Shown here: positions 1,136-57,039 of the stretch, in pieces
How the letters are laid out: every line of letters begins with the position of its first letter
How positions within the stretch are numbered: position 1 is the first letter of the stretch
From: Ruditapes philippinarum
Taxonomy: Eukaryota
Direction: 5' to 3'
Length of the DNA stretch: 64,000 bases
NCBI RefSeq assembly: GCF_026571515.1
Contig: NW_026857187.1
Location: 1 to 64,000 of the forward strand
Notes under the pieces: model-generated
What the model saw: the letters and a program-made list of their open reading frames with translations, nothing else
Told to the model about the DNA's origin: nothing
Database searches by the model: none
Made by a program: the position numbers and the translations under genes

Positions 1136-4100
1136 TTGAAAGATGGTTCTTTTGTTTTACCTGAAGGATATGGACAGCAGTGTCTACAGAGTCAAATTGA
1201 GAAAAGTAAGATTTTCACACTCTTTCACCTATTTATTCTTAAGTTGAATAATTATTTTTAAAAAAAAAGAAGCTTCATTTGCAACTTCTTATAATGAATA
1301 TGACCGTTTGTACTTTTTGTTCCAGACATATAACAAACGTTAACTATTTTTCTAAATCGTACTACTGATAAATTTTTTATGGACATGGATATGAATTCGG
1401 AACTATTTGTTAACATTTTAAAGTGTAATAAGCTATATCTAATGAAATATAAAATGCCTATGATATTTAACACACATGAATAATGTTCGTTTACAAAATA
1501 ACATGTCTGGGAAAAAAATGTCATACTGCCTTTTTAAGTAGGACTTTAGCCATTTTGTATTGATTTTAATCTCTTCACACAAATTTCTTTCATGCATGTA
1601 TTTTGGAACTATTCTGTTTTCATAATTCAAACAATAAATATATAGCTTTATACACTTTAAGGGTTCTTTTAATATTTTTAAAAAATGTGCAAAATCTGGT
1701 CAGATTTAAAAGAAGTGAAAAACTGACCTGGTTTGACGTTTGTGGTAAAATTAAGTCATTATCAGTGCATGCTATCAACAATTTTAAAGTACCGGGGTAT
1801 TTGTAATAAGGAAGTTGTTGTATGATAGAATAAGACTTCTGTTCTTTCAATGTCTTGATCGTTCCTATGTACAGTATCTTATTTAAAGCATAACATTAAA
1901 GGTATAAATGTTTTCTTTAAATTTTTATACGGTTGTATGGTTTGAGACTGGTAAATAACAAATTGTGTACTTGGTATAATATTAAATGGCGGTTAATCCT
2001 TTTTTTCTTTTCTCAGATCTTAAGAAGGACTTAATACAATTCAACAAAGATATACATGGCACGATACCTATCTCTCCGTTGTTTGAAGATATTGACATGG
2101 CAATTCCCGACGTTTATGTCCAGCCTACAATCAACAGGGTTTTGTCGGGCTGCCAAAACGCCAACAAAGGCCAAAGAACAGCACGTATATCATCTTTGAG
2201 AGAAATATTTCATGGTCAGAACAGACCTTATCGTGAAATATATTTGTGTGCAGAAACCGGGCTTGGAAAATCGGTGTTTGGAAAACGGTTAGCTTTGATA
2301 TGGAGCCAAGCGAACGAATCTGACAAAATTCAGAGAAGCTTTACCCAGGACGAAATCGACGCAATCAGTTATTTCGATTTTGTATTTTACATTTCCTTAA
2401 AAGAATCTGATCAGACTCATCTTGATGTTGATGAAATGATAAAACAACAGATCATTAGATATCTTGCGCATGCGTCACAATACAAAACTGAATTTCTTGA
2501 ACATATCTTATCAGAGAGAAAATGTCTGATTATTCTAGATGGTCTCGACGAATGGTCACATGAAAAAGGGAATATTCCAATGAGAAGACCCAGGCAGTCT
2601 TGCACATTTTTAACCACCACTCGCCCTTGGAGATATACAGTGGCTAGAATAAAACAAAGTAAGATTGATCTACAGCTAGAAATGACAGGTATTGATAAAG
2701 AGGGTAAGAAAGCTTTAATAACAAACATATTAAAACAGTTCGGTAGTTGTGACGATCAATCGGAGTTGGAGAACAGTTTGAAGGAATTTGAGAAAAAAGT
2801 TGCAAGAAGAAACGTCAATGACCTGGAGACTAGTCCAATGTTATTATTATACATGATATGTCTCTGGCAGGATGGGAATCCATTAGGTGATTCTCGTTGT
2901 GATTTATACTGTAACATCTTAGAGATGCTACTACAAAAGGTGGCACAACGACAGCAACAGGAGGTAGAAATTAACCAGAATGACAGTACTTACAAACCAG
3001 AATGCTTCAAGGGAAAGGAGCATTGTTGTAAGAACATTCATTTCGTGAAGAAATTGTCGCATCTTGCTTTCCTTACTCTCTTCAATCAAAGTTCAGCAGA
3101 AAATAGGCTGGTATTTAATGAAGACATAGCAAAGAAAAACATGTCAGAAAGCTGCATTGAATTTTGGCTGAAGACCGGCATTATAACTCAGATAGTACGG
3201 AGTAAAGGATTAACATTCCGTGATATAAGGATATCCTTTATACACAAAACTTTTCACGAGTTCTTCGCTGCTCTCCATGTAGCATTTAACCAAAAAGAGA
3301 CAGACATTGTGATTAAATCATGTCCAGATATAAATTCAGTTTTACTGAACGCAAGCTGTTTACAGAATCTATGTGGGCTCAGTCCAATTGCAAGTCAAAC
3401 AGTTCTAAACGGGATAGCAAATGTTATTTCAAACAGTTGTCAAACAAAAAGCCTCCGGAGAAATACGTACGCTTTCGCAGACTACTGGGAAATGTGTGAT
3501 TTAAAACAAGATTTCCAGAATGTAATGGTAGCGTGTGTGAATGAATGTAGAGACAACGGGTACGAACCTCGTTATCAGTTGGAAGATTTGTTTCTGAATT
3601 TTGATGGTGAACCTGAAAGTCAGTATGTATCATCATTGATTGATTTATTAAGACACTCAGATGTAAAATCAATCAAATTCGGACGCGCCCTTTCCCGCAA
3701 AAGTGTCCATGATCTAAGTCTGCGACTGGAAGTGGAAAAAATGAAATCGCTGCAAAAACTGGATATCTGGGGTCATCCTTGTAGTAAAGATGTTGAAATG
3801 ATGCTAGGGGCGTCTCCAGACACATTAGAGTGTCTTCTTCTTCATGGCTGCAAAATAAAAGGAACGGACAAAAATGAAAAGTACATTGAAGTATCTGAGG
3901 AAAGTGTCAATAAACTGCTGTCTTTAAAGGTTTTGGAAAGCATCGACCTTTATCGTATATCAATGAATCATGGTCAGATAGAAAAAATAGTAAAGTGGAT
4001 AGAAGGTAGGAAGTCGATGAAACAAATTAAAATAGCCCGGGTAAAATGCCTAGATCATGAGAATAACAATTGTTTTGCGCGTATACTGGATCTTTCGGAA

Positions 4101-4652
4101 CACATGCAACTTGATGTCATTGGTGTTGGAAACATGTGCGCTGATCAGGTAAAGGTCAACCCCTTATCAATACGGGAATTTTGGGGAGAATGCAACCAGG
4201 CTATGGTCATTTCATTCTTGACCGACTATGCTTCGTCCGCCATAAATATTCATACATTAGTTATTGAATTTATAGATTCATACGAAACTGTCAAAAAGAT
4301 ATTAAGTACATTAACTGATTTGCAACACTTAGTTAACCTACAATTGAAACGTCTTGACCTGCAAGAAAATGAACTGATATTGTCGAGACACAAAACTGTT
4401 GAACACGTGCGACTTATTGAAATAACTATGGAGAATCAAGCACTACGAAACTTGATTGAACAGTTAAGTACATATAAACATAGTGTTACAGTAGAAATCG
4501 CATCGTGTGAGGTGGAGCATGAGAACGGTGCCGAAAGTTATGAAGAGCTAAGACAAAAAATAGAGATGTCACCTGAAAAATACTCTGTAATTGCCAACCT
4601 GAAATGCTCCGGACACGACAATGCTTTTGCGTTCAGAACAATGCCTTCGTAA
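1136..4652 (+). CDS. NLR-like NACHT-LRR gene, copy 1 (partial: last two coding exons 1136-1205 and 2017-4652; N-terminal exons lie upstream of the window)
   Basis: Exon 1136-1205 (ttctag|TTG...AAAA|gtaag; LKDGSFVLPEGYGQQCLQSQIEK, phase 1) joins in frame to exon 2017 (tctcag|). Open frame runs to TAA 4652. Motifs: Walker A AETGLGKS, Walker B CLIILDGLDEW, sensor-1 TTTRP, WHD FIHKTFHEFFAA, LxxLxL-type C-terminal repeats. Confidence 0.9.
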
Positions 4653-5199: not shown

Positions 5200-6325
5200 A
5201 AGTGTGTTTAACTACGTGTTATGTTAGTGTATTGGATACGCGTGATGGTCAATCTCATTTGAAACGCGTAGGGTAAGTGTATTTGATAAATGTGACAGGT
5301 ACGTGTATTTGATCTGCTAGTTAGTTTAGTTAGTTAATTGTATTTGATACACATGCTATTTAAATGTATTTGATGCAAGTGAAAGTCAAGTGTATTTGAT
5401 ACGCATGTTACGAGTATTTAATAGTATTTACTGTATTTGATACACATGTTCATGACATTTAATTTGTATGTTAATCTAATATACTTGACACACATGCTAC
5501 TTCAGTAAATTTGATTCACGATATAAGTGTATTTCATGCGTAGGTTATTTAAGTGTATTTGATACGAATGTTATTTAAGTGTATCTGGAACCGACGTTAT
5601 TTAAGTGTATTTGATACGCAGGTTTCTTCAATGTATTTGATACGCATGTTATTTAAGGGTATCTTGTAGCCAGGTATTTTAAGTGTATTTGATACGCAGA
5701 TTACTTAAGTGTATATGATACGCATGTTATTAATGGGTATCTTGTACCCACGTTACTGAAGTATATTTGGCAGCAGGTTACTTATGTGTATATGATAAGC
5801 ATGCTATCTAAGGGTATCTGATACCCACGTTACATAAGTGTATTTGATATGCAGATTACTTGTATGTATTTGACACTCATGTTATTTAACTGTATTTGAT
5901 ACCCGCGTTACTTTAGTGAATGTAATACGTAGGTTACTTAAGTGTATTTCATACGCAGGTTACTTAAGTGTTTTTCTGGTACCCACGTTACTTAAGTGCA
6001 TTTGATACGCAGGTAACCTAAGTGTATTTGATACGCAGGTTATTTATGTGTATCTAGAACCAACCTTACTTAAGTGTATTTGATGAGCAGGCTACTTAAA
6101 TGTTTTTGGATACGCAGGTTATTTAATTTATCTTGTAGCCATGCTTCTTAAGTTACATAAGTGTATTTGATATGCATGTTATTTAAGTGTATCTGGTTCC
6201 CACGTTACTTAAGTGCATTACGCAGGTTATTTAAGGGTTTTTGATATGCATGTTATTTAAGTGTATCTGGTGCCCACGTTATTTAAGTGTTACTTAAGTG
6301 TATTTGATACGCAGGTTATTTAAAA
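5200..6325 (+). repeat. 26-bp minisatellite (consensus ttaagtgtatttgatacgcaggttac), unit 1
   Basis: Direct 26-bp periodicity with an interspersed variant (tctggtacccacg core). Confidence 0.9.
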
Positions 6326-8062: not shown

Positions 8063-9500
8063 AACAAGATTGCATTTGAGAAAAATGCTATGCCACCGCA
8101 TTAATACCTAAGCTCTAGGCCTTTTGGGCATTTACAAGAAGGTATTTTAAGTTTTTGAAGCCTTGTACCTTGTACCTACAGACAATAAGATTTTTTTATT
8201 TTTTACTATATGTATATATTGAAAATCAATGACCCCCGGGCCGGGGGCAATTTTGACCCCAGGGCTATAATTTGAACAATCTTGCTAGAGGTTCACTACA
8301 CAATGTTTCATGCAAAATATCTAACCTCTAGCATTTGTCAATTGCTAGAAGAAATTTTTTTAAAGTTTTTACTATATACATATAACGAAAACCAATGACC
8401 CCCAGGGCAGGGCCGATTTTGACCCCAGGGCTATAATTTGAACAATCTGGGTAGAGGTCTACAACACAATGCCTTATGCTCTAGGCCTTTTGGGTCTTTA
8501 CAAGTAGGTATTTAAAGTTTTTACTATATGTACATATAGTGAAAATCAATGGCCCCCGGGGCGGGGCCGATTTTGACCCTAGGGCTATAATTTGAACAAT
8601 CTTGGTAGAAGTCTACCAGGCAATGCCTTATGCAAAATATCTAAGCTCTAGGCTATTTGGGTCTTTACAATAAGGTATTTTAAGTTTTTACTATATGTAC
8701 ATATAGTGAAAATCAATGACCCGGGGCAGGGCCGATTTTGACCCCAGGGCTATAATTTGAACAATCTTGGTAGAGGTCTACCAGACAATGCCTTATGCAA
8801 AATATCTAAGCTCTAGGCCTTTTGGGTCTTTACAAGAAGATTTTTTAAATTTATTCTTATAATTCCTTTTTGGTTGCCATGGCAACCAGATTTCTGTATG
8901 GAATGAAATTCTTTGAACAACTTTGGAAGCCCTTCACCCAAGGATCAATCCTGCCAAGTTTGGTTGAATTGGACTATTGGTTTTTCACAAGAAGATTTTT
9001 TTACGTTCACTATATAATCTATATAACAATGACCCGGGGCGGGGCCTATTTTGACCCCAGGGCTATAATTTGAACAATGTTGGTAGAGGTCTACCAGACA
9101 ATGCCTTATGCAAAATATCTAAGCTCTAGGCTATTTGGGTCTTTACAATAAGGTATTTTAAGTTTTTACTATATGTACATATAGTGAAAATCAATGACCC
9201 CGGGGCGGGGCCGATTTTGACCCCAGGGCTATAATTTGAACAATCTTGGTAGAGGTCTACCAGACAATGCCTTATGCAAAATATCTAAGCTCTAGGCCTT
9301 TTGGGTCTTTACAAGAAGATTTTTTAAATTTGTTCTTATAATTCCTTTTGGTTGCCATGGCAACCAGATTTCTGCATGGAATGAAATTCTTTGAACAACT
9401 TTGGAAGCCCTTCACCCAAGGATCAATCCTGTAAAGTTTGGTTGAAATTGGACTACTGGTTTTTCACAAGAAGATTTTTTAAGTTCACTATATAATCTAT

Positions 9501-9552
<52 letters not shown>

Positions 9553-10360: not shown

Positions 10361-11622
10361 TGTGTGTGTGTTATATAGATTATATAGTGAACTTAAAAAA
10401 TCTTCTTGTGAAAAACCACTAGTCCAATTTCAACCAAACTTGGCAGGATTGTTCCTTGTGTAAAGGGCTTCCAAAGTTGTTCAAAGAATTTCATTCCATG
10501 CAGAAATCTGGTTGCCATGGCAACCAAAAGGAATTATAAGAATGAATTGAAAAAATCTTCTTGTAAAGACCCAAAAGGCCTAGAGCTTAGATATTTTGCA
10601 TAGGGCATCATCTGGTAGACCCTTACCAAGATTGTTCAAATTATAGCCCTTGGGTCAAAATCGGCCCCGCCCCTGGGGGAATTGATTTTCGCTATATGTA
10701 CATATAGTAAAAACTTAAAACACCTTCTTGTAAAGACCCAAAAGGCCTAGAGCTTAGATATTTTGCATAAGGCATTGTCTGATAGACCTCTACCCAGATT
10801 GTTCAAATTATAGCCCTGGGGTCAAAATCGGCCCCGCCCCAGGGGTCATTGGTTTTCCGTATATGTATATAGTAAAAACTTTAAAAAAATTCTTCTAGCA
10901 ATTGACAAATGCTAGAGGTTAGATATTTTGCATGAAACATTGTGTTGTAAACCTCTAGCAAAATTAGCCCCGCCCTTGGGAGCCATAGGTTTATCGTATA
11001 TGTATATAGTTAAAACTTAAAAAATCATCTTCTCTAAATTTACAAAGGATAGAGTTAAGATATTTTGCATGAAACATTGTGTAGTGAACCTCTAGCAAGA
11101 TTGTTCAAATTATAGCCCTGGGGTCAAAATTTGTTCCGCCCCGGGGGTCATTGATTTTCATTATGTACATATAGTGAAAAAAAATTTTTGTCTGAAGGTT
11201 CAAGGCATAGAGCTTTGATGTTTGATATATAATATCATCTATAGGTCCTCTACCAAAGTTGTTCAAATGTCAAAAATTGGCCCTGCCCGGGGGCAGTGGT
11301 TCTCATTATGTACACAAATATTTTCTGAATGGGAGAAAGCTATAGCTTAGATATTTGACTTGAAATGTTGTTTGGTGGACCTGTATCAAGATTGTTATTA
11401 AACCCTTGGGTCAAAATAATGCCTTGCCCAAGGGGACAGTGACCTACTTTCTGGTCCTTTGATGTACAGCAATGACATTTTGACCATGTGCACAGTTTTA
11501 GTTGTAAAATTGAACTTTGACCTAGATTTTGATGATGTGACCTACTTTCTTGTCCTTTGATGTACAGCTATGAAATTTGAACCATGCGGTGGCATAGCAT
11601 TTTTCACAAATGCAATCTTGTT
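10252..11622 (+). mobile_element. Helentron/pearl-type element, family A (inverted relative to 8063-9617)
   Basis: Same termini in reverse complement; (TG)n/(GCGT)n microsatellite; ~166-bp units; empty T-run site near 28388. Confidence 0.85.
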
Positions 11623-14325: not shown

Positions 14326-14560
14326 TACATTTCTTAACATGAACGGAACATCCCTTAAAATGATAAATAATGAGATTGCTAATTGGTTTGACGGAATTAT
14401 CAAACAATACTCGTGTTTTTTCTTTCTTATTTCTGATAATACATAGCGTGCGAATGAATTTATGCACATGTAAAAGGTTTATCTAGAAACAATATAGTTG
14501 TTTCTCCTAGTACATGTATGATTGTGTCTTTTCAGTTCAGTTAATGGGCAGGAAACGAAG

Positions 14561-17500
14561 ATGTCGTACTATACGTCTAAACTGACAAACAAGGACTGTC
14601 TTAACTGGGTCAGGGCGCACCTTGCTGTATCTGAAGCCAAAGCTGGCTTACAGGATGTCGTCTGCGACACGTTGCAAGTTCGTCATCAGAAGATTATTAA
14701 GCCTGTCACAACTCAAACTCTCAGTAACTTCCGGTGCTCAAGTTGCTACACTCAGACAATTATTTGCTGTTCATTATACACTTGTAATCGCGTTGGAAGA
14801 AAGTGATCGAAGCATCAACAATTTAGACCGTGCCCAAATGGAGTGTGTGACAAGATACGGGATAGAATTATAACAGATCATAGACACTCCAATCCTTCCT
14901 GGAAGAATACTCGTGCAGAACTTTGGAACACATCCTACTGGGAGTATGCTAAATGTTTTATGCCCCTTGAGGGGTATTCCGACAAAAATGCCTATTCAGA
15001 AACAGACCTAAATGGAATCATAAGTATATTGTTAAACCAGAATGATTTTGTTAACGAAGTCGACGATTCCATTTGTCATAAGGTAACGAAACGGTATTAT
15101 TTAGAATTTATACTCTCTTTCCACACTTTAAAGTGACATTATGCCCATCCAAGGGTATAAATGAGTGGACAGGTGGAAGTCAAAAAATGTTTTCGTTTTG
15201 CCATAATTCATTTTAATATAAACATTTACTTTACATTAACAATAAACAACGCACGGATCCAAATGAATTTATCGTAGATATTCATTAGAATTTACCTGTA
15301 ATGTTCAGTATATAAAAAGAGTGGGGTAGTTTTTTTTATATTTTAGGCAGATTTAATTTTTTCAATATGTACTGTGGTCAATCACCATTTTAACAGCCAA
15401 TCTTTTGAAATATATAGTCAGTTCATCTCAACTTGACTATAAAAATATGAGCATAATTTTACTTTAAAGGTTCGCAAATTTTGTTTGTCTATAAGCCTTT
15501 CCATTATAATTAACACTCGGAATTTTAAATTTTAGAATATCTTTAAATATGTTAAATTCACAATCGCAACTTTTCGGCCCTTTCCGTCAGTCTTCGGATA
15601 AAAACCTCGAACTCAATAGTATGAATACACAAAACGGATACGGTATTTCGGTCTAACCTACGCTAACGATTATTTTTTACAGTAAATATAGTTAGTTTCT
15701 AATAATGTACATCTACAAACTGCAAATTTATTGTAAAATTGTATCAAAACGCTATAATTCATATTTTTAAACTCACTTTCTCTCACTTTCGTCAAAAAGT
15801 CATATTCGTATTTAAGCCAAACCCGAGGGAAACAGGCGGTAAAAAGGCTACTTTTTACTTTTCACCGGTCGACGGGCGACATGCGGTACGATATTTTCTA
15901 AAATGTCGCTTCGCATTGTCGAGCGCCGTTTGAGATTGTCGCATGTCATTTGAAATTTTCGCGCGTCGACCCTCAAACAAAACCGCGACACGCGACATAC
16001 GATATGACATTTGGAAAATGTCGCTTCGCATTGTCGACTGTCGTTTGAGATTGTCGCTTGTCGTTTGATAATGTCGCCGTCGCATTTGCATGGTCGACAC
16101 ACGACAACGCGAAGTGACATAGCGACAATGCGATACGACACTTGACAATGCAAAGCGACATCGCGATATATCGTGCTTTTAAAGGCGACATCTTAAATGG
16201 ATATCGCGATATTATCGTTTGAGATTGTCGCCGTCGTTTATGATTGTCGGGTGTCACTTCGTAATATCGCTATGTCATTTCGCGTTGTCGTGTGTCGACC
16301 ATGCAAACGCGACGGCGACGTTATGAATGACTCCAACAGGATTCCGTATAAATGAATAAAATTTAGTATGTATAACAATGAATTACATGTTTACAAATCG
16401 CGCATTATGCCAGCTTAATACATCCAAACACTGTTTTCATATGACCCCCTTAACATTTTGTGCAGTATAATGTCAGAAAATACTGAAGTACATAATGATA
16501 AATACATATAATGTCAGAAAATAAACAATGACGATAAGTTTATTAAAATGTTCAAATTGCACGATTTACACAGGCACGACATTTATTGAACAATTTGAGA
16601 CACAATTCAGATATGTTACTTAGTGACCAGATGTTAGAAGATGTCGTCTGCACACTACAACAACTTCTGTCCTGTTGTGAGAGTTTCAAGAATTATTCCA
16701 AGACCTCAGACGCTCGAGCCAAATTAGAACAGGTTAATACAGTATTGTTGTTGATGGTGCATGGTGTGTTGTTTTTTTTTGTTTTTTTTTTTTGTGTGTG
16801 TGTTCGTGTTTTTATTTTAGTTTTTCATCAATAACGATGTTTGAAACATTTATCTCCCTTAAAATGCTTAAAGGTCCAATATTCAAAAATTACCAGGAGT
16901 ACCAAGTCTGTCTATATAAAACAGCACACTTCATATACCACTTATTATGGTTAAGTACTATATCAATGAAATACACGCATACATGTAGTTTGTGACAACT
17001 GATTCAAAGACTGTTCAACATTAACTTAAAGAGGAACTTATAAGGAAGAGGAAGTTAAATTAATTGTTGATGTAAAACACAAATTGTTATTATTATAAAA
17101 CGAAATGTTATGATTATTATGTAATAATTATGCCTCTTTTAAATAAAAATGTGTATATTGTTATGCAATAGTCTGTCTGTCGGTTCCGATCAATAACTAG
17201 AAAATCATTTCACCTACATCCTTCAAATTTCATAGGATAATCACCCTTATTAAGTAGAAGTACTCGAATGTTTTGGGCAATGATGCTTGAAATTATTTTC
17301 AATGATTGCCAACCCCGATATTGAGACCTCCCTGTTATTATGTAACTCGACCATTTTCTCACCTTGATATTGATGTGCATTGTTATCGCTGAATCCTTTT
17401 GACACGTGATGTAAACAACAATTGTCTTAGTTTTACGATAAATAACCAGTTCGTGTTTTTCGATATTTTCTTTTTTTTTAATCCTTTGTAATTTTGATGT

Positions 17501-20500
17501 TTACATTTAAAGAAATGTCTATTGTCGCCCTTGAAATTGCAGTGATAAGCCAACCATTGAATTTCCCGCTGTTTTTAGAACAATTATTGTGGTCATGTAA
17601 CATAGTAGTCACTCTTGCTCTCTCAGTTTTCTTAATGAGCAGTTGATACTTTACATTACTTAAATTAACTTTATTTATTCATTTAAACTATTTTGGTATA
17701 TCTTGGAAATTAAAGATTGAGATTGGTTGATCTTGTTTTAAACTATTGATGCATCTTTTGAGTCACAAATTGGCAATGCCATACAACATTTTTAACTTTC
17801 CATTCCAGTTGAAAGCTGGTTCTTTTGCTTTACCTGAAGGATATGGACAGCAGTGTCTACAGAGTCAAAGTAAGATTTTCACACTCTTTCACCTATAAGT
17901 TATTCTTAAGTCGAATAATTATTTTAAAACATTTGAAGCTTCATTTGCAACTTCTTAATTAGAATGAATATGACCGTGTGTGTTTCTTTTCCAAGCATAC
18001 ATGTATAACAAACGTTGACTATTTTTGGCCGGGTTGCACATGTGCAAACCGGGTTATAGTATGATGAATGATGGGCGGTTGACGGGCGGCGGGCGGGCGG
18101 GGAAAAATTTTCGTAACAGTTTTCTCAGCAGCTTCTTATCACAACCTCTTGATATTTAGCATACAGCATCAACACATGGTCCCATACTGTGGGATTCGAT
18201 TTCAGGTCTGTCGCTCATCCACTTCCTGTTTGTCGACTTAGTTAAATTTTCTACATTAATGGTCAATAGTAAGAAATTTGCGTAACAGTTTTCTCAGCAA
18301 CTACTATTCACAGCCTCTTGATATTTGGCACACAGCATTAACACATAGTCCCATACCGTGGGATTTGATTTCAGGTCTGTCGCTCATCCACTTCCTGTTT
18401 GCCGACTTAGTTAAATTTTTAACATTAATGGTCAATAGTAAGACATTTTAGTAACAGTTTTCTCAGCAACTACTTATCACAGCCTTTTGATATTTGGTAT
18501 ACAGCATCAACACATGGTCTCATATCGTGGGATTCGATTTCAGGTCTGTCGCTCTTCCACTTTCAATTTGACTTAGTTAAATTTTCTACATTAATGGTCA
18601 ATGATAGGAAATTTTCGTAACAGTTTTCTTAGCAATTTCTTATCACAGCCTTTTGATATTTGATATACAACATTAACACATGGCCCCATACCGTGGGATT
18701 CGATTTCAGGTCTGTCGCTCATCCACTTCCTGTTTGCCGACTTAGTTAAATTTTGACATTAATGGTTAATTGTTGGAAATTTTCGTAACAGTTTACGCAG
18801 CAACTTCTTATCACAGCTTTTTGATATTTGGTATACAGCATAAACACATTGTCCCATACTGTGGGATTTGATTTCAGGTCTGTCGCTTATCCACTTCCTG
18901 TTTGCCGACTTAGTTAAATTTTGACATAATTAATGATCAATAGATAGTAGGAAATTTTCGTAACAGTTTTCTCAGCAACTACTTACCACAGCCTCTTGAT
19001 ATGTGGTTCACAGCATTGACATGTGGTCCCATATTGTGGGATTCCATTTCAGGTCTGATGCTCATTCTTTTCCGGTTTACCAACTAAGTTAAATTTTCAA
19101 CATCAATGGTCAGACAGTGGTAGAAAATTTAAGTAACATCACAGCCTCATGATATTTTGTATACATTTGCAACCCGGCCTTTTCTGTCTCTGACCCATTT
19201 TTCTAAATCGTTCTACTGATAAATTTTCATAATGGACATGCAGTGATATGAATTCGGAAATATTTGTTCACATTTTAAAGTTTAATGAGCTATATCTACG
19301 TCTCTGTTATTCAACACACATGAATAATATTCGTTTACAAAATAACATGTCTGGGAACAAAATGTCATACTGCCATTTTAAGTAGGACTTTAGCCATTTT
19401 GTATTGATTTTGTCTCTTCACACAAATTTCTTTCATGCATGTATTTTGGAACTATTCTGTTTTCATAATTCAAACAATAAGTATATATCTTTACACACTG
19501 TAAGGGTTCTTTTAATATTTTTAAAAATGTGCAAAATCTGGTCAGATTTAAAAGAAGTGAAAAACTGACCTGGTTTGACGTTTGCGGTAAAATTTAGACA
19601 TTATCAGTGCATGCTATCATCAATTTTAAAGTACCGGGGTATTCGTAATAAGGAAGTGATTGCATTATAGAATAAGACTTCAGTTCTTTTAATGTCTTCA
19701 TCGTTCCTATGTACAGTATCTAATTTAAAGCATAACATTAAAGGTAAAAATGTTTTTTTATACGGTTGTATGGTTTGAGACTGGTAAATAACAAATTGAG
19801 TAGTTGGTATAATATAAAATGGCGGTTAATCTTTTTTTTTTTTCTCAGTTCTTACGAATGACTTGATACAATTCAACAAAGATATACATGGAACGATACC
19901 TATCTCCCCGTTGTTTGAAGATATTGACATGGCAGTTCCCGACGTTTATGTCCAGCCTACAATCAACAGGGTTTTGTCGGGCTGCCCAAACGCCAAAAAA
20001 GGCCAAAGAACAGCACGTATATCATCTTTGAGAGAAATATTTCACGATCAGAACGGACCGTATCGTGAAATATATTTATGTGCAGAAACCGGGCTTGGAA
20101 AATCGGTATTTGGAAAACGGTTAGCTTTGATATGGAGCCAAGCGAACGAATCTGACAAAATCCAGAGAAGCTTTACCCAAGACGAAATCGATGCAATCAA
20201 TTATTTCGATTTTGTATTTTACATTTCCTTAAAAGAATCTGATCAGACTCATATTGACGTTGATGAAATGATACAGCAACAGATCATTGGACATCTTGCG
20301 CATGCGACACACTACAGCCCTGAATTTCTTGAACATATCTTATCAGACAGAGACAGAAAATGTCTGATTATTCTAGATGGTCTCGACGAATGGTCACATG
20401 AAAAAGGGAATATTCCAATGAGAAGACCCAGGCAGTCTTGCACATTTTTAACCACCACTCGCCCTTGGAGATATACAGTGGCTAGAATAAAACAAAGTAA

Positions 20501-22514
20501 GATTGATCTACAGCTAGAAATGATAGGTATTGATAAAGAGGGTAAGAAAGCTTTAATAACAAACATATTAAAACATTTCGGTAGTTGTGACGATCAGTCG
20601 GAGTTGGAGAACAGTTTGAAGGAATTTGAGAAAAAAGTTGCAAGAAGAAACGTCAATGACCTGGAGACTAGTCCAATGTTATTATTATACATGATATGTC
20701 TCTGGCAGGATGGGAAACCATTAGGTGATTCTCGTTGTGATTTATACTGTAACATCTTAGAGATGCTACTACAAAAGGTAGCACAACGACAGCAACAGGA
20801 GGTAGAAATTAACCAGAATGACAGTACTTACAAACCAGAATGCTTCAAGGGAAAGGAGCATTGTTGTAAGAACATTCATTTCGTGAAGAAATTGTCGCAT
20901 CTTGCTTTCCTAACTCTCTTCAATCAAAGTTCAGCAGAAAATAGGCTGGTATTTAATGAAGACATAGCAAAGAAAAACATGTCAGAAAGTTGCATTGAAT
21001 TTTGGCTGAAGACCGGCATATTAACTCAGATAGTACGGAGTAAACGATTAACATCACGTGATATAAGAATATCCTTTATACACAAAACTTTTCACGAGTT
21101 CTTGGCTGCTCTCCATGTAGCATTTAACCAAAAAGAGACAAACATTGTGATTAAATCATGTCCAGATATAAATTCAGTTTTACTGAACGCAAGCTGTTTA
21201 CAGAATCTATGTGGGCTCAGTCCAACTGCAAGTCAAACAGTTCTAAACGGGATAGCAAATGTTATTTCAAACAGTTGTCAAACAAAAAGTCTCCGGAGAA
21301 ATACGTACGCTTTCGCAGACTACTGGGAAATGTGTGATTTGAAACAAGATTTCCAGAATGTAATTGTAGCGTGTGTGAATGAATGCAGAGACAATCGGCA
21401 CGAACCTCGTTATCAGTTGGAAGATGTGTTTCTGAATTTTGATGGTGAACCTGAGAGCCAGTATGTATCATCATTGATTGATTTACTAATGCACTCAGAT
21501 GATGAATCGTTAAGGCACACAGGTGTTAAATCAATCAAATTTGGACGCGCTCTTTCCCGCAAAAGTGTCCATGATCTAAGACTGCGACTGGGCGTGGATA
21601 AAATGAAATCACTGCAAAAACTGGATATATGGGGTCATCCTTGTAGTAAAGATGTTGAAATGATGCTAGGCGCGTCTCCGGACACATTAGAGTGTCTTCT
21701 TCTCCACGGGTGCGAAATGAAAGGAACAAAAGAAATTGAAAGGTACATTGAAGTATCTGAAGAAAGTGTTAATAAACTGATGTCTTTAAAGGTTTTGGAA
21801 AGCATCGACCTTTATTGTATATCAATGAATCATAGACAGATAGAAAAAGTAGTAAAGTGGATAGAAGGTAGGAAGTCGATGAGACAAATTAAAATAGCCC
21901 GGGTAAAATGCCTAGATCATGAGAATAACAATTGTGTTGCGCGTATACTGGATCTGTCTGAACACATGCAACTTGATGTCATTGGTGTTGGAAACATGTG
22001 CGCTGACCAGGTAAAGGTCAACCCCTTATCAATACGGGAATTTTGGGGAGAATGCAACCAGGCTATGGTCACGTCATTCTTGACCGACTACGCTTCGTCC
22101 GCCATCAATATTCGTACATTAGTTATTGAATTCATAGATTCATACGAAACTGTCAAAAAGATATTAAGTACATTAACTGATTTTGAACACTTAGTTAACC
22201 TACAATTGAAAGGTCTTGACCTGCAAAGAAACGAACTTATATTGTCGAGACACAAAACTGTTGAACACGTGCGACTTATTGAAATAACTATGGAGAATCA
22301 AGCACTGAGAAGCTTGTTTGAACAGTTAAGTACATATAAACATAGTGTTACAGTAGAAATCGCCTCGTGTAACGTGGAGCATGAGAACGGTACCGAAAAT
22401 TATGAAGAACTAAGACAGGAAATAGAGATGTCGTCTGAAAAGTACTCTGTAATTGCCAACCTGAAATGCTCCGGACACGACAATGCTTTTGCGTTCAGAA
22501 CACTGTCTTCATAA
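14561..22514 (+). CDS. NLR-like gene, copy 2: CXorf38/DUF4559-like (HEPN-like) domain + NACHT + degenerate LRR; ~1135 codons with one in-frame TGA at 14804-14806 (possible young pseudogene or allele)
   Basis: Exons 14561-15082, 16574-16732, 17809-17869 and 19849-22514 all have GT-AG ends and compatible phases (3408 nt total). The N-terminus NWVRAH...WEYAKCFMP..GY...TDLNGIISILLN...NNLRHNS resembles CXorf38 (recalled NWVKAG...WEVAKAFMP...RNEIMHS). NACHT motifs as in copy 1. Confidence 0.85.
15132..15463. mobile_element. TTAA-flanked MITE (Kolobok-like termini)
   Basis: TTAA|agtgacattatgcccat...atgagcataattttact|TTAA; absent from the copy 3 intron. Confidence 0.7.
15820..16350. mobile_element. 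TGTCG/CGACA-rich non-autonomous element fragment
   Basis: Dense tgtcg/cgaca motifs with internal duplications; ends ttccgta; absent from the copy 3 intron. Confidence 0.55.
18027..19197 (+). mobile_element. Helentron/pearl-type element, family B, with ~169-bp tandem array
   Basis: 5' ggccgggttgca-catg-tgcaaaccggg hairpin; (gggc)n; six units from 18112 to 18959; 3' tgcaacccggcc; empty T-run sites near 1346 and 33667. Confidence 0.85.
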
Positions 22515-23499: not shown

Positions 23500-24100
23500 T
23501 TAAGTGTATTTGATACACATGTTACGAGTATTTAAGAGTATTTGACAAGCATTTTCATTGTATTTTGTTCACATGTTCAGTGCATTTAATATGTAGTTTA
23601 GTTAAATGAATTTGATATGCATATTAGTTTAGTAGTGTATTGATACGCAGGTTATTTAAGTGTATTTGATACGCATGTTATTTAAGTGTATCTGAAACCC
23701 ACGTTATTTAAGTGTATTTGATACGCAGGTTACTTGAGTGTATTTGATACGCAGGTACTTCAGTGTATTTGATACGCAGGTTATTTACGTGTATTTGATA
23801 CGCATGTTATTTAAGAATATTTGTACCCACGTAATTTAAGTGTATTTGATACACAGGTTACTTAAGATTATATGATACGCATGTTATTTAAGGTTATCTG
23901 ATACCCACGTTACATAAGTGTATTTGATACGCAGGTTACTTAAATGTATTTGATACTCAGGTTATTTAAGGGTATTTGATACCCGTGTTATTTTAAAGAA
24001 TGTAATACGTATGTTACTTAAGTGTATTCATACGCAGGTTACTTAAGTGTTTTTCTGGCACCACGTGTTACTTAAGTGTATTTGATACGCAGGTTATTTA
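23500..24100 (+). repeat. 26-bp minisatellite, unit 2
   Basis: Same consensus; period measured from 23641 to 23667. Confidence 0.9.
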
Positions 24101-24666
24101 AAAAAAATTATGAGTTTTGAATTTTATTGCAATGACTGTCTACTTTTATTTTTAAACATTCCAGGAATACTCATACATGAAATGTGCAATCAAATTTGTA
24201 TATCCTATTGCTATGTTCACGTGTAGTTTATGTTAAAAACATAATATGAACGCTTATGTGACAAATAGTAGATGTATACTGCTTGAAAATAAACAACAAT
24301 ATAAATATTTTTGTTTTACTTCTTTTAATTGAATTTTGATAGAGCTAATTGTGAATCTCTCAGAATAAAAAGAAAAGTTAAACTGATAACATAATTGGTT
24401 ACAAAACAAAACAAAAGTAAAATTGAACTTCAGTAAGTCGAAGTAAAATAATCTTGTATAAAACCTTCATGTCATCGGGACTGCGACCTTCATTTATTTA
24501 TTATAGTTATACATTATACATGTATATTTGTGAGTCACGACAAAAGAGATGCGTGTTCAGCAAGCGGAGCGTTGTATAGTTGGGGATTCCGCCTATTGTA
24601 TTGTTAAAATGTAATTGGCTATTTATATTATATGTCATACCATACACATAAATTACCAGATTATTC

Positions 24667-55007: not shown

Positions 55008-57039
55008 TCAAGACTTTGTTAAATCTGTTTCTATGTTCATGTCAGTTTTTCTGTCTCTCTTGTTATGTGCATTGTTCTTTTCAGAATCAATTTCTACTGA
55101 CTCCTCCTCCTCTTCATTATCATCCTCGTCATCGTCATCATCATCCTCGTCGTCGTCTTCATCGTCGTCATCTTCATCACCCTCATCATCATCAGAGGGA
55201 TATCCTCGTATAAATGCCCTCACATCAAGACCGTTGCATTCCTCTTCTAGGCCTTCTATGCCAGTTTTACCAACCAGAATGTAATCTAGACCCTGAAATA
55301 AAATGTACTTATGTTATAACAGTGAACATGTTTAATATTAAATACATGTATACAAATTTGGAATAGTCCATTATTAATGTAAAGGGTAATATTTAAGGTC
55401 ATGTTGTAGCTATTACTGAAAGAGTAAGACCCAATAAAACCCTCAATGTATCATTTACTGTAAAGGCATCACTCATGAGCCTGCTAAACCATGCTTATTA
55501 TAAACCACTAACCATTTAACTTTGCTGGAACTAAAACTGATTTTGCAGCACAATCAAACTAGGCTCTATACTGTTGGCTGACAAACATTCAATTTTCATC
55601 TTGATACCCTAATATTACTTATAATGGACAAATCCAAAAAATGTCAATTGATCAAGTCAGAATGTTAACTTAAGGTTTAAAAAAGGTACCAAGTCTTGAA
55701 GTTGGATTAAAATCCATGGTGGCTATTGAAATATGCTTCTATAATGAAAACATTTAAGTTTATTTAACATAAGAAAAATAATTGATAATTTAAGCCCGAA
55801 ACAATTCATTTTCATCAATTAACACAATTTTATTCATTTACAAAAAATAATTATAAAGTTTGGTAATAATTTGGCTTAAACAGCATGCATGCAATGAATA
55901 TTTCAGAAAAAAGTAATTTCAGCAATACATAAAGTTCTTTCAAATGAATACAAGGCAGGTATAATAAGACTGTTTAAAAATTTCTTTAACAAGGAAAGAT
56001 GCTATTAAGAAGAGCTGTCCGTAAGACAGTGAGCTCGACTATTCTCAGTGCTTTAGAGTAAGAAAAGGGGCACAACCCTATAAAAAAGGTAACTTAGAGT
56101 TATTGGACCTGTGCCAATCATTTTAGATAATCACAGAGAATAGTGTGTGAAGTTTCAATCCATTTCATTCAGTAGATTTTGAAAAACTTAACAAAAATTT
56201 GACAGTGATGCCAACACCAAAGCCAGGGTGATAACAGTAGCTCTTCCTTTTCATTGAATAGCCGTGAAACAATTGAAAATGATAAAAAGAATTAACACTG
56301 TGTTTACCTTCCAATGGTCAGGTTTATCCTGTATTGCATTATCCCGTAGATCAAATTTTGTGAGCTTCGCCAGAGCTAGAAGTGTATCATCACTTACAGA
56401 CATCACCTCATTTCCTGTCATATGTAATGACATCAACTCAACACAGTCTGTTAAACACTCTGGTATTGATGAAAATTTGTTCCTATTTAAATCTAAATAA
56501 ACTAATGACTTCAGATTTGAGAATTGTTTAGGAAGTGAGTCTAATATGTTATTTGCAAGGCAACACCATCGTAACATTTTGAGATCACCAAATGTTGACG
56601 GTAATGATGTCAATCTATTCCCTTTCAAGCTCAGAGTTTGTAGACTAGAGAGACATCCAATCTCTTCTGGAATATTGATAAATTCACATTCAACAAGCCA
56701 CAAATGTGTCAATGAAGTAAGCTGACCTATTTCTGGGGTCAAAATATTCAATGGATTATGACAAACACTGAGAAGTTTTAAATTTGTCAACTTTGATATT
56801 CCTGTTGGTAGCATGGTGAAGTTATTGTTGTCTAAAGTTAACTCCTCTAATTGGACTAGGGTCATGATCTCTGAAGGTGGCATCAATAGCTTGTTATCAT
56901 TAAGTAATAGTTTCTTCACTTTACATAGCTGATGTATATTACTTGGTAAAATCGTCATATTTCTGTTACTCAGATTAAGTAACTCTCTTTCATTTGCTAT
57001 GGCTTTCTTCAGAAGATTCTCTATCTCCAGTAAGTCCAT
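55008..57039 (-). CDS. Leucine-rich repeat protein (~338 aa, ~9-10 SHOC2/Scribble-type 23-aa LRRs) with Asp/Glu-rich C-terminal tail
   Basis: Exon 57039-56308 has regular LxxLxLxxNxLxxLP repeats and ends AAG|gtaaac. It joins in frame (phase 0) to exon 55292-55008 (ttcag|GGT; GLDYILVGKTG...DDDEGDEDDDDEDD...). An in-frame stop upstream of the ATG at 57039 supports this start. Confidence 0.85.

Follow-up and report, generated by a model that had tools for sequence, protein, structure and literature searches.

The stretch of DNA analysed here (the window: 64,000 nt, positions 1-64000 of contig C5674 of Ruditapes philippinarum, starting at contig position 1) very probably holds a tandem array of NLR-type (STAND) innate-immune receptor genes of a family expanded in bivalves, in which a CXorf38/DUF4559 head is followed by a linker, a NACHT domain and an LRR-like C-terminus. 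Three units, copies A, B and C, lie in the window, and a further copy, D, lies on another contig. The span 14561-22514 is the coding span of a single four-exon gene, copy B (NCBI LOC132749026), whose product starts with a Cys-rich DUF4559/CXorf38 domain of ~227 aa, continues through a short helical linker and ends in a body made up of the NACHT domain, a helical domain (HD), a winged-helix domain (WHD) and the LRR-like part. We base this architecture on Pfam matches to DUF4559 and NACHT, orthologs that hold both domains in a single protein, a splice between exons 1 and 2, the NCBI model P0001 joining exons 1-4, and a predicted NLR fold. An initial annotation of the window had proposed a tandem NLR-like cluster with a Cys-rich DUF4559/CXorf38 head in the place of a CARD, PYD or DD domain, and the Pfam DUF4559 and NACHT matches together with the NLRC4-like fold bear this out. 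An immune role is predicted for the locus.

Gene model and domain architecture of copy B

The exons of copy B, all on the plus strand, were defined by tblastn with P0001 and the Mercenaria ortholog P0002, combined with reading of the splice sites. Exon 1 (14561-15082, 174 codons) contains the start codon, HEPN helix 1, the Cys-rich Zn-ribbon insert and the core through the TDLNG helix; it aligns by tblastn with residues 1-173 of P0002 and ends at the donor GTAACG. Exon 2 (16574-16732, 53 codons), matched by both P0001 and P0002, carries the HEPN motif helix (ARHLLNNLRHNSD) and the helices after it, and is bordered by the acceptor CAG and the donor GTTAAT. Exon 3 (17809-17869) is a 61-nt linker exon of phase 1 with a 100% match to residues 94-114 of P0001 and with splice sites that could be read directly. 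Exon 4 (19849-22514) encodes the NACHT domain, the helical and winged-helix domains and the LRR-like C-terminus, with an open reading frame (ORF) of 883 aa at 19863-22514. Every border is of the GT..AG type and the phases are consistent (0, 0, then 1 completed by exon 4). The resulting gene of ~1135 codons is colinear end to end with the Mercenaria proteins P0002 and P0003 (1145 and 1146 aa) at 53% identity. The N-terminal domain, previously put at ~230 aa and in frame with a NACHT-WHD-LRR-like part, comes to ~227 aa, and its fusion to that part is upheld by the consistent phases, by P0001 and by the colinearity of the orthologs.

Exons were searched singly, and whole-domain tests used natural intact orthologs and paralogs in the place of a joined spliced model. 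The piece of exon 1 at 14843-15133, downstream of an in-frame TGA in the reference sequence, matches Pfam DUF4559 (PF15112) at E 1.2e-8 and 35.3 bits, for a cut-off of 27. Against the same profile the scores are 52.2 bits for the ortholog P0002, 60.5 bits for the ortholog P0003 and 66.6 bits for P0096, a protein of the subtype found in the window. In P0002 and P0003 the match extends over profile positions 1-235, with NACHT in the same ~1145-aa protein. Pfam did not find DUF4559 in exon 2 alone or in the first piece of exon 1, both of which are too short.

The 883-aa ORF of exon 4 matches Pfam NACHT (PF05729) at 32.8 bits versus a cut-off of 26.7, and both its Walker A (GLGKS) and Walker B (LIILDGLDEW) motifs are intact. 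Across 55 sequences, the NACHT residues G77, G79, K80 and D172-E176 are invariant or nearly so. An AlphaFold2 model of this ORF, built with 55 homologs, reached a pLDDT of 87.4 and a pTM of 0.87. When the model was searched with Foldseek, the top match was full-length NLRC4 (4kxf; E 2e-23, TM-score 0.53, ~1000 columns), followed by NOD2, NLRP9, NLRP3 and NAIP5, the matches to NLRC4, NOD2 and NLRP3 ranging from E 2e-23 to 1e-15. The body with its nucleotide-binding domain (NBD-HD1-WHD-HD2-LRR) is thus shared with NLRC4, NOD2 and NLRP3 at TM-scores of up to 0.53, whereas the sequence identity of these proteins to the clam body is 12-15% and their effectors are CARD, PYD or BIR domains, not HEPN. 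When the NACHT ORF and P0096 were compared with PDB sequences by phmmer, neither gave a match. For the C-terminus of copy B, none of the Pfam LRR models matched at E<=1, and an Atlas search gave weak LRR leads (0.85). In the model, strand/helix units alternate over residues 557-880, the last ~320, in the manner of an LRR solenoid; the LRR nature of this part therefore follows from the structure model, not from Pfam. Judged by the predicted structure, the label NACHT-WHD-LRR-like is correct for exon 4.

Transcripts and the nonsense codon in copy B

Four runs were compared over 14450-20400 of the window (5,951 letters): X1 and X2, which are contigs whose RNA status is a guess, and X21 and X23, which are RNA-seq on record. 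The splice between exons 1 and 2 is present in the X1 and X2 contigs, with the joint 15080(+2)->16572(+2) and GT..AG ends. The RNA check of the junctions thus came out in favour of the exon 1-exon 2 part of the gene model, whereas for the joints between exons 2, 3 and 4 nothing in the four runs rose above the threshold for listing. Since the 2-3 and 3-4 junctions were not seen in reads, they are supported by P0001 and by the colinearity of the orthologs. Along with these missing junctions, other points tell against an intact and expressed gene. RNA depth is modest over exons 1-2 of copy B, thin over exon 4 and low overall, and the protein encoded by the reference haplotype of copy B would lack helix 1 and the Zn ribbon.

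The latter is due to an in-frame TGA in exon 1 of the reference (14804-14806, plus strand), which occupies a nearly invariant Cys codon of the Zn ribbon. The corresponding residue of P0002 is Cys, and the codon is TGC in copies C and D. In all covering data position 14806 is C and not the reference A (X1, 27.4/27.4 and X2, 61.7/61.7 in depth; X21, 9/9 reads), and some of the reads with C at this position are otherwise identical to copy B. We considered a paralog as the source of the TGC reads and rejected it. Apart from B itself, the assembly contains this exon only in copies C and D, which are 93% and 92% identical to B, respectively, and differ from it at many positions near 14806, including a 9-nt deletion in D. 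Because the TGC-bearing reads match B and are unlike C and D, they stem from the locus of copy B itself. The RNA of the three runs comes from different studies, and copy B is probably open in other animals; the reference TGA is either a nonsense allele, probably polymorphic, or a base error or misassembly. The NCBI model starts at an internal Met, omits the first 133 codons and loses the DUF4559 call, and the record shows NACHT only.

Two simpler explanations of the locus were weighed against that of an array of full-length receptor genes, and both were rejected. According to one of them, exons 1-3 and exon 4 would belong to two genes, one for a small DUF4559 protein and one for a NACHT-LRR protein. 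Many database entries of 160-350 aa are indeed DUF4559-only, and the joint between exons 3 and 4 is not among the read data. But both domains occur in one protein in the orthologs and in dozens of paralogs, the exon phases fit, the NCBI model joins the exons, and copies C and D have the four-exon layout as well, which leaves very little probability for two genes. The other explanation is that the cluster is decaying DNA, with B and C as pseudogenes and the array without current function. It draws on the reference TGA in exon 1 of B, on four lesions in C, on the 133 codons missing from the NCBI model of B and on the low RNA depth. Against it stand the TGC (Cys) codon found at 14806 in all covering RNA data, from three runs of different studies, the open exon 4 of copies A, B and D with a ratio of nonsynonymous to synonymous substitution rates (dN/dS) of ~0.28, and the existence of spliced exon 1-exon 2 contigs. 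We regard a decayed array as improbable.

Some intron segments of copy B show RNA or contig depth in the hundreds to thousands, with many loose ends. These are a 169-bp tandem repeat in intron 3 (18105-19112) and short segments in intron 1 (15128-15159 and 15561-15600). They belong to transcribed repeats that are abundant elsewhere in the genome, and their depth does not reflect expression of copy B.

The DUF4559 head and its active site

The CXorf38 family has been defined as HEPN domains into which a Zn ribbon is inserted, with NACHT/Death fusions described from cephalochordates and cnidarians; the family was predicted to be active, and a role in defence against RNA viruses was proposed (PMC3710099). 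Inactive HEPN versions are listed in several families (Anantharaman 2013, PMC3710099). The motif of human CXorf38, whose position we took from a 2026 preprint, is 162-RNEIMH-167 with a His-Asp dyad that is proposed as the core of the site. The initial annotation had presented the clam locus as a new immune context for CXorf38, a claim that does not hold because the HEPN assignment, the Zn ribbon, the NACHT fusion and the antiviral role are all already in PMC3710099.

Among 51 sequences, six Cys of the insert (C66, C69, C83, C91, C104 and C109 in P0096 numbering) are invariant or nearly so. The AlphaFold model of P0096 (pLDDT 87.3) places the Cys cluster in a non-helical insert, residues 63-107, between helix 1 and helix 2, and copy B holds all six Cys except the one replaced by the reference TGA. 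This Cys-rich insert is a predicted Zn ribbon. Asp162 of the TDxNG helix, Arg189 (position -8) and His197 (same numbering) are likewise invariant or nearly so in the 51 sequences.

Several results weigh against a conventional HEPN nuclease head. Foldseek of the P0096 model against PDB returned nothing at E<=0.001, and the VIA-align lists for this model are dominated by a 60-residue linker helix. The best domain-wide match of the nuclease type, the HEPN toxin AbiF (8vz6_A; Z 4.9 over 156 residues, rmsd 5.1), appears to lie within the noise for helical bundles and is not significant. In hhalign comparisons of DUF4559 with the DZIP3-type HEPN heads of paralogs, the two conserved helices, including the His-bearing one, come into register at E 0.001-0.006, which speaks for a HEPN identity, but the probabilities are low at 6-21%. 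As for the motif itself, that of copy B is RHLLNNLRH, i.e. R-x7-H with a second Arg at -1, and the canonical Rx4-6H is absent. Nor is copy B an isolated case, as positions -5 to -7 are without Arg in 71 of 76 related bivalve sequences. This count covers the 150 best representatives plus the matches of the first search, 76 of which had a locatable motif, and it is biased to the clade of the window. Position -5 in the 71 is Leu, Val, Gly, Ser or Thr, and in the non-canonical sequences position -1 is Arg and position -4 is often Arg or Lys. Other DUF4559 paralogs of the clam read RNE[IT][FLY]H or RN[AD]xxH. These canonical paralogs gave sub-threshold matches to HEPN_Swt1, HEPN_Apea and HEPN_RiboL-PSP on the motif helix (E 0.14-0.29), unlike the sequences of the window subtype, for which Pfam gave no sub-threshold matches to the HEPN clan. 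We accept the HEPN homology of the head on published grounds, to which our own tests add weak support. Of the HEPN-like nuclease-fold effector suggested earlier, the DUF4559 membership and the published HEPN family stand, while the Rx4-6H motif turned out to be non-canonical and the structural search yielded no significant HEPN match. With the canonical Arg lost in most of the clade, RNase activity of the head is uncertain.

The altered site can be understood in different ways. The head may be a non-catalytic HEPN derivative, a Zn-binding oligomerisation or adaptor module that recruits partners as death-folds do. This would fit the replacement of the Arg at -5 in 71 of 76 sequences while other clam paralogs keep RNExxH, the lack of sub-threshold HEPN matches that sets the window-type sequences apart from the canonical paralogs, and the inactive HEPN versions listed in several families (PMC3710099). 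However, the near invariance of His197, Arg189 and Asp162 is unexpected for a decayed site, the basic residue that recurs at -4 and/or -1 could replace the lost Arg, and the 2026 preprint puts a His-Asp dyad, not the Arg, at the core of the human site. We therefore hold a non-catalytic head to be a real possibility, at somewhat less than an even chance. The same residues can be read as signs of a rewired HEPN active site, the head still being an oligomerisation-gated RNase with a non-canonical catalytic constellation. The loss of Arg(-5), the nearly invariant Arg(-8), His and TDxNG Asp, and the new basic residue at -1 and/or -4 are the grounds for this proposal, which is tentative and, in our assessment, less likely than not.

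HEPN domains are typically active only as dimers with a composite site, as in RNase L, Ire1, Cas13 and Csm6. For the receptors encoded by the array, we infer a sequence of LRR sensing, NACHT oligomerisation and head pairing, with a nuclease or signalling output. Ligand sensing at the LRR would release autoinhibition, and oligomerisation driven by NACHT would bring the N-terminal domains together. Given the dimer dependence of HEPN domains, head pairing would create a composite site that would cleave RNA, host or viral; alternatively, the paired heads would form a signalling platform, with a non-catalytic head passing on the signal should the site have lost its activity. By analogy, the clam receptors may share with the RNase L/Ire1 KEN proteins and the bacterial STAND (Avs-type) sensors the logic of sensor-driven oligomerisation that activates a nuclease effector, dimer-dependent in the case of HEPN, although homology of these systems to the clam gene does not go beyond the HEPN superfamily or the STAND class.

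Family distribution and evolution of the array

The R. philippinarum genome contains at least 128 PF15112 exon matches, nearly all without stops; this is a lower bound, as 129 of 485 candidates were scored. A profile made from clam exon-1 sequences found 809 cluster representatives at E<=0.001, many of them 1000-1700 aa in length. The expectation that similar fusions would occur in other bivalves proved right, as the DUF4559-NACHT fusion is also present in Mercenaria and Mya, and in Corbicula (PMC8298618). Among the nearest NACHT paralogs, the N-terminal position is taken by either DUF4559 or a DZIP3-type HEPN (PF18738), the latter being the case for P0007, P0008 and P0012, and one paralog has HEPN plus CARD. 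This pattern fits an N-terminus that would serve as an exchangeable effector slot.

The clam gene resembles the CXorf38-HEPN fusions with NACHT/Death of Branchiostoma and Nematostella (PMC3710099) in family, Zn ribbon, NACHT partner and proposed defence logic, and differs from them in belonging to Mollusca, Bivalvia, and in having an LRR-like C-terminus. PMC3710099 lists the CXorf38 family as active, whereas the clam clade lacks the canonical Arg of Rx4-6H. Closer in lineage is Corbicula fluminea, a bivalve of the same order-level group, in which 45 of 99 NACHT/NLR genes carry DUF4559 according to the 2021 genome paper (PMC8298618), and which thus shares both the architecture and the lineage expansion with the clam gene. 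That paper gives domain counts only; it does not assign the domain to HEPN, analyse the motif or describe the structure of loci and the state of alleles. In the pearl oyster, expansions of HEPN(DZIP3)-NACHT genes described in 2022 form tandem arrays with copy-number and haplotype variation. They are like the clam locus in having an N-terminal HEPN, NACHT and repeats in tandem arrays, but their heads belong to another HEPN family (PF18738), have no Zn ribbon and are mostly of the typical Rx4-6H type, which 194 of 202 heads keep, and in these respects the clam clade differs.

HEPN-headed NLRs, including those of the CXorf38 type, are therefore already in print, with predictions from 2013 and bivalve counts from 2021-2022, and the conceptual gain from the locus is accordingly small. 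What it does provide is a full DUF4559(HEPN)-NACHT-LRR gene where the NCBI annotation of gene B is 'uncharacterized' and truncated at the reference stop, together with the exon structure, the state of the nonsense codon and, for the array, its birth-and-death dynamics. That the canonical Arg is lost in most of the bivalve clade may be unreported; we found no earlier mention of it. If most bivalve DUF4559-NLRs lack this Arg, two conclusions are open: these proteins are not RNases, or HEPN catalysis tolerates more variation than the Rx4-6H rule suggests. The clam genome holds natural pairs for such a comparison, with canonical RNExxH paralogs beside those of the LRH/VRH type. Should the rewired-RNase reading be true, these would be the first animal NLRs shown to have a direct enzymatic (RNase) effector, and the head would be a new catalytic HEPN variant.

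The second DUF4559 subfamily of the clam, which keeps RNExxH, was seen on other contigs (L007:1501-2301 and 2973-3575; L013-L016, L018 and L019). Most of its domain lies in one exon, a hydrophobic segment resembling a transmembrane helix comes next in open frame, and an exon for an NPHP3_N/NACHT-like P-loop NTPase (Pfam E 3e-12) lies on the same strand, 200-700 bp further downstream. Should all of this form a single gene, and should the transmembrane helix be real, head and NTPase would be separated by a membrane, an unusual arrangement; another possible explanation of the hydrophobic stretch is translated intron sequence. Some other DUF4559-NACHT/LRR proteins (P0133, P0150, P0154, P0172 and P0143) have two tandem Zn-ribbon inserts before the HEPN core, which read as two ...C..C...C.FH...RPCP..C modules.

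Self-comparison of the window revealed three units sharing an exon 4 of ~2.65 kb that is 95-96% identical, spaced at 17.8 kb from A to B and 14.4 kb from B to C. In copy A, exon 3 (1136-1205, plus strand) was placed by tblastn and splice sites, and exon 4 (2017-4652, plus strand) encodes an intact NACHT-LRR part (ORF 1986-4652, 888 aa) with 92% amino acid identity to P0001. As the window starts at contig position 1, exons 1-2 of copy A lie beyond the start of the contig. Copy C, also on the plus strand, has a broken exon 1 (31148-31668) with a TAA at 31406-31408 and a 1-bp deletion near 31556, an exon 2 (32419-32577) found by tblastn, an exon 3 (33476-33545) found likewise, with its end set by analogy with copy A, and a pseudogenised exon 4 (34286-36955). 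The latter is interrupted by a stop at 35779-35781 and a frameshift near 36790, where the tblastn alignment breaks at 36789/36791, leaving ORFs at 34210-35781 and 35803-36813. With these four lesions (two stops and two frameshifts), copy C is a pseudogene. The triplicated unit described earlier is thus confirmed for exon 4, which is present in A, B and C, while it is incomplete otherwise, with exons 1-2 of A beyond the contig and C a pseudogene.

Copy D is located on the minus strand of contig C9072, with exon 1 at 8342-7821 and exon 4 at 5124-2470. It has the four-exon layout, all of it open, and is ~96% identical to copy C, of which it may be the haplotig (an intact allele); it may otherwise be an extra paralog. 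By sliding identity, exon 4 of copy C is a mosaic, its first ~750 columns being closest to A (97-100%) and its last ~1000 closest to B/D, which suggests gene conversion or unequal crossing-over. For exon 4 among A, B and D, dN/dS is 0.27-0.30 at a dS of ~0.1 (A versus B, 0.28), with similar values for the NACHT and LRR halves, and for exon 1 of B versus D it is 0.44. These ratios indicate that the open copies are under purifying selection. Overall, the array evolves via duplication, gene conversion and pseudogenisation.

Repeats accompany the copies. A 26-bp satellite (~70-77% matches, 15-23 copies) occurs at 5524-6290, 23579-24101 and 37635-38591, in all three units ~0.9-1.1 kb downstream of the NACHT exon, and belongs to the duplicated unit. 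A tandem repeat of ~165 bp forms arrays, found in both orientations, between and beyond the copies (8478-9506, 10550-11102, 26178-27261 and 53389-54108). Further along the window, a 262-aa ORF on the minus strand (56251-57039) matches LRR_14 (E 2e-22) and LRR_8 (E 2e-21) and represents a separate LRR exon that is unrelated to the NLR copies.

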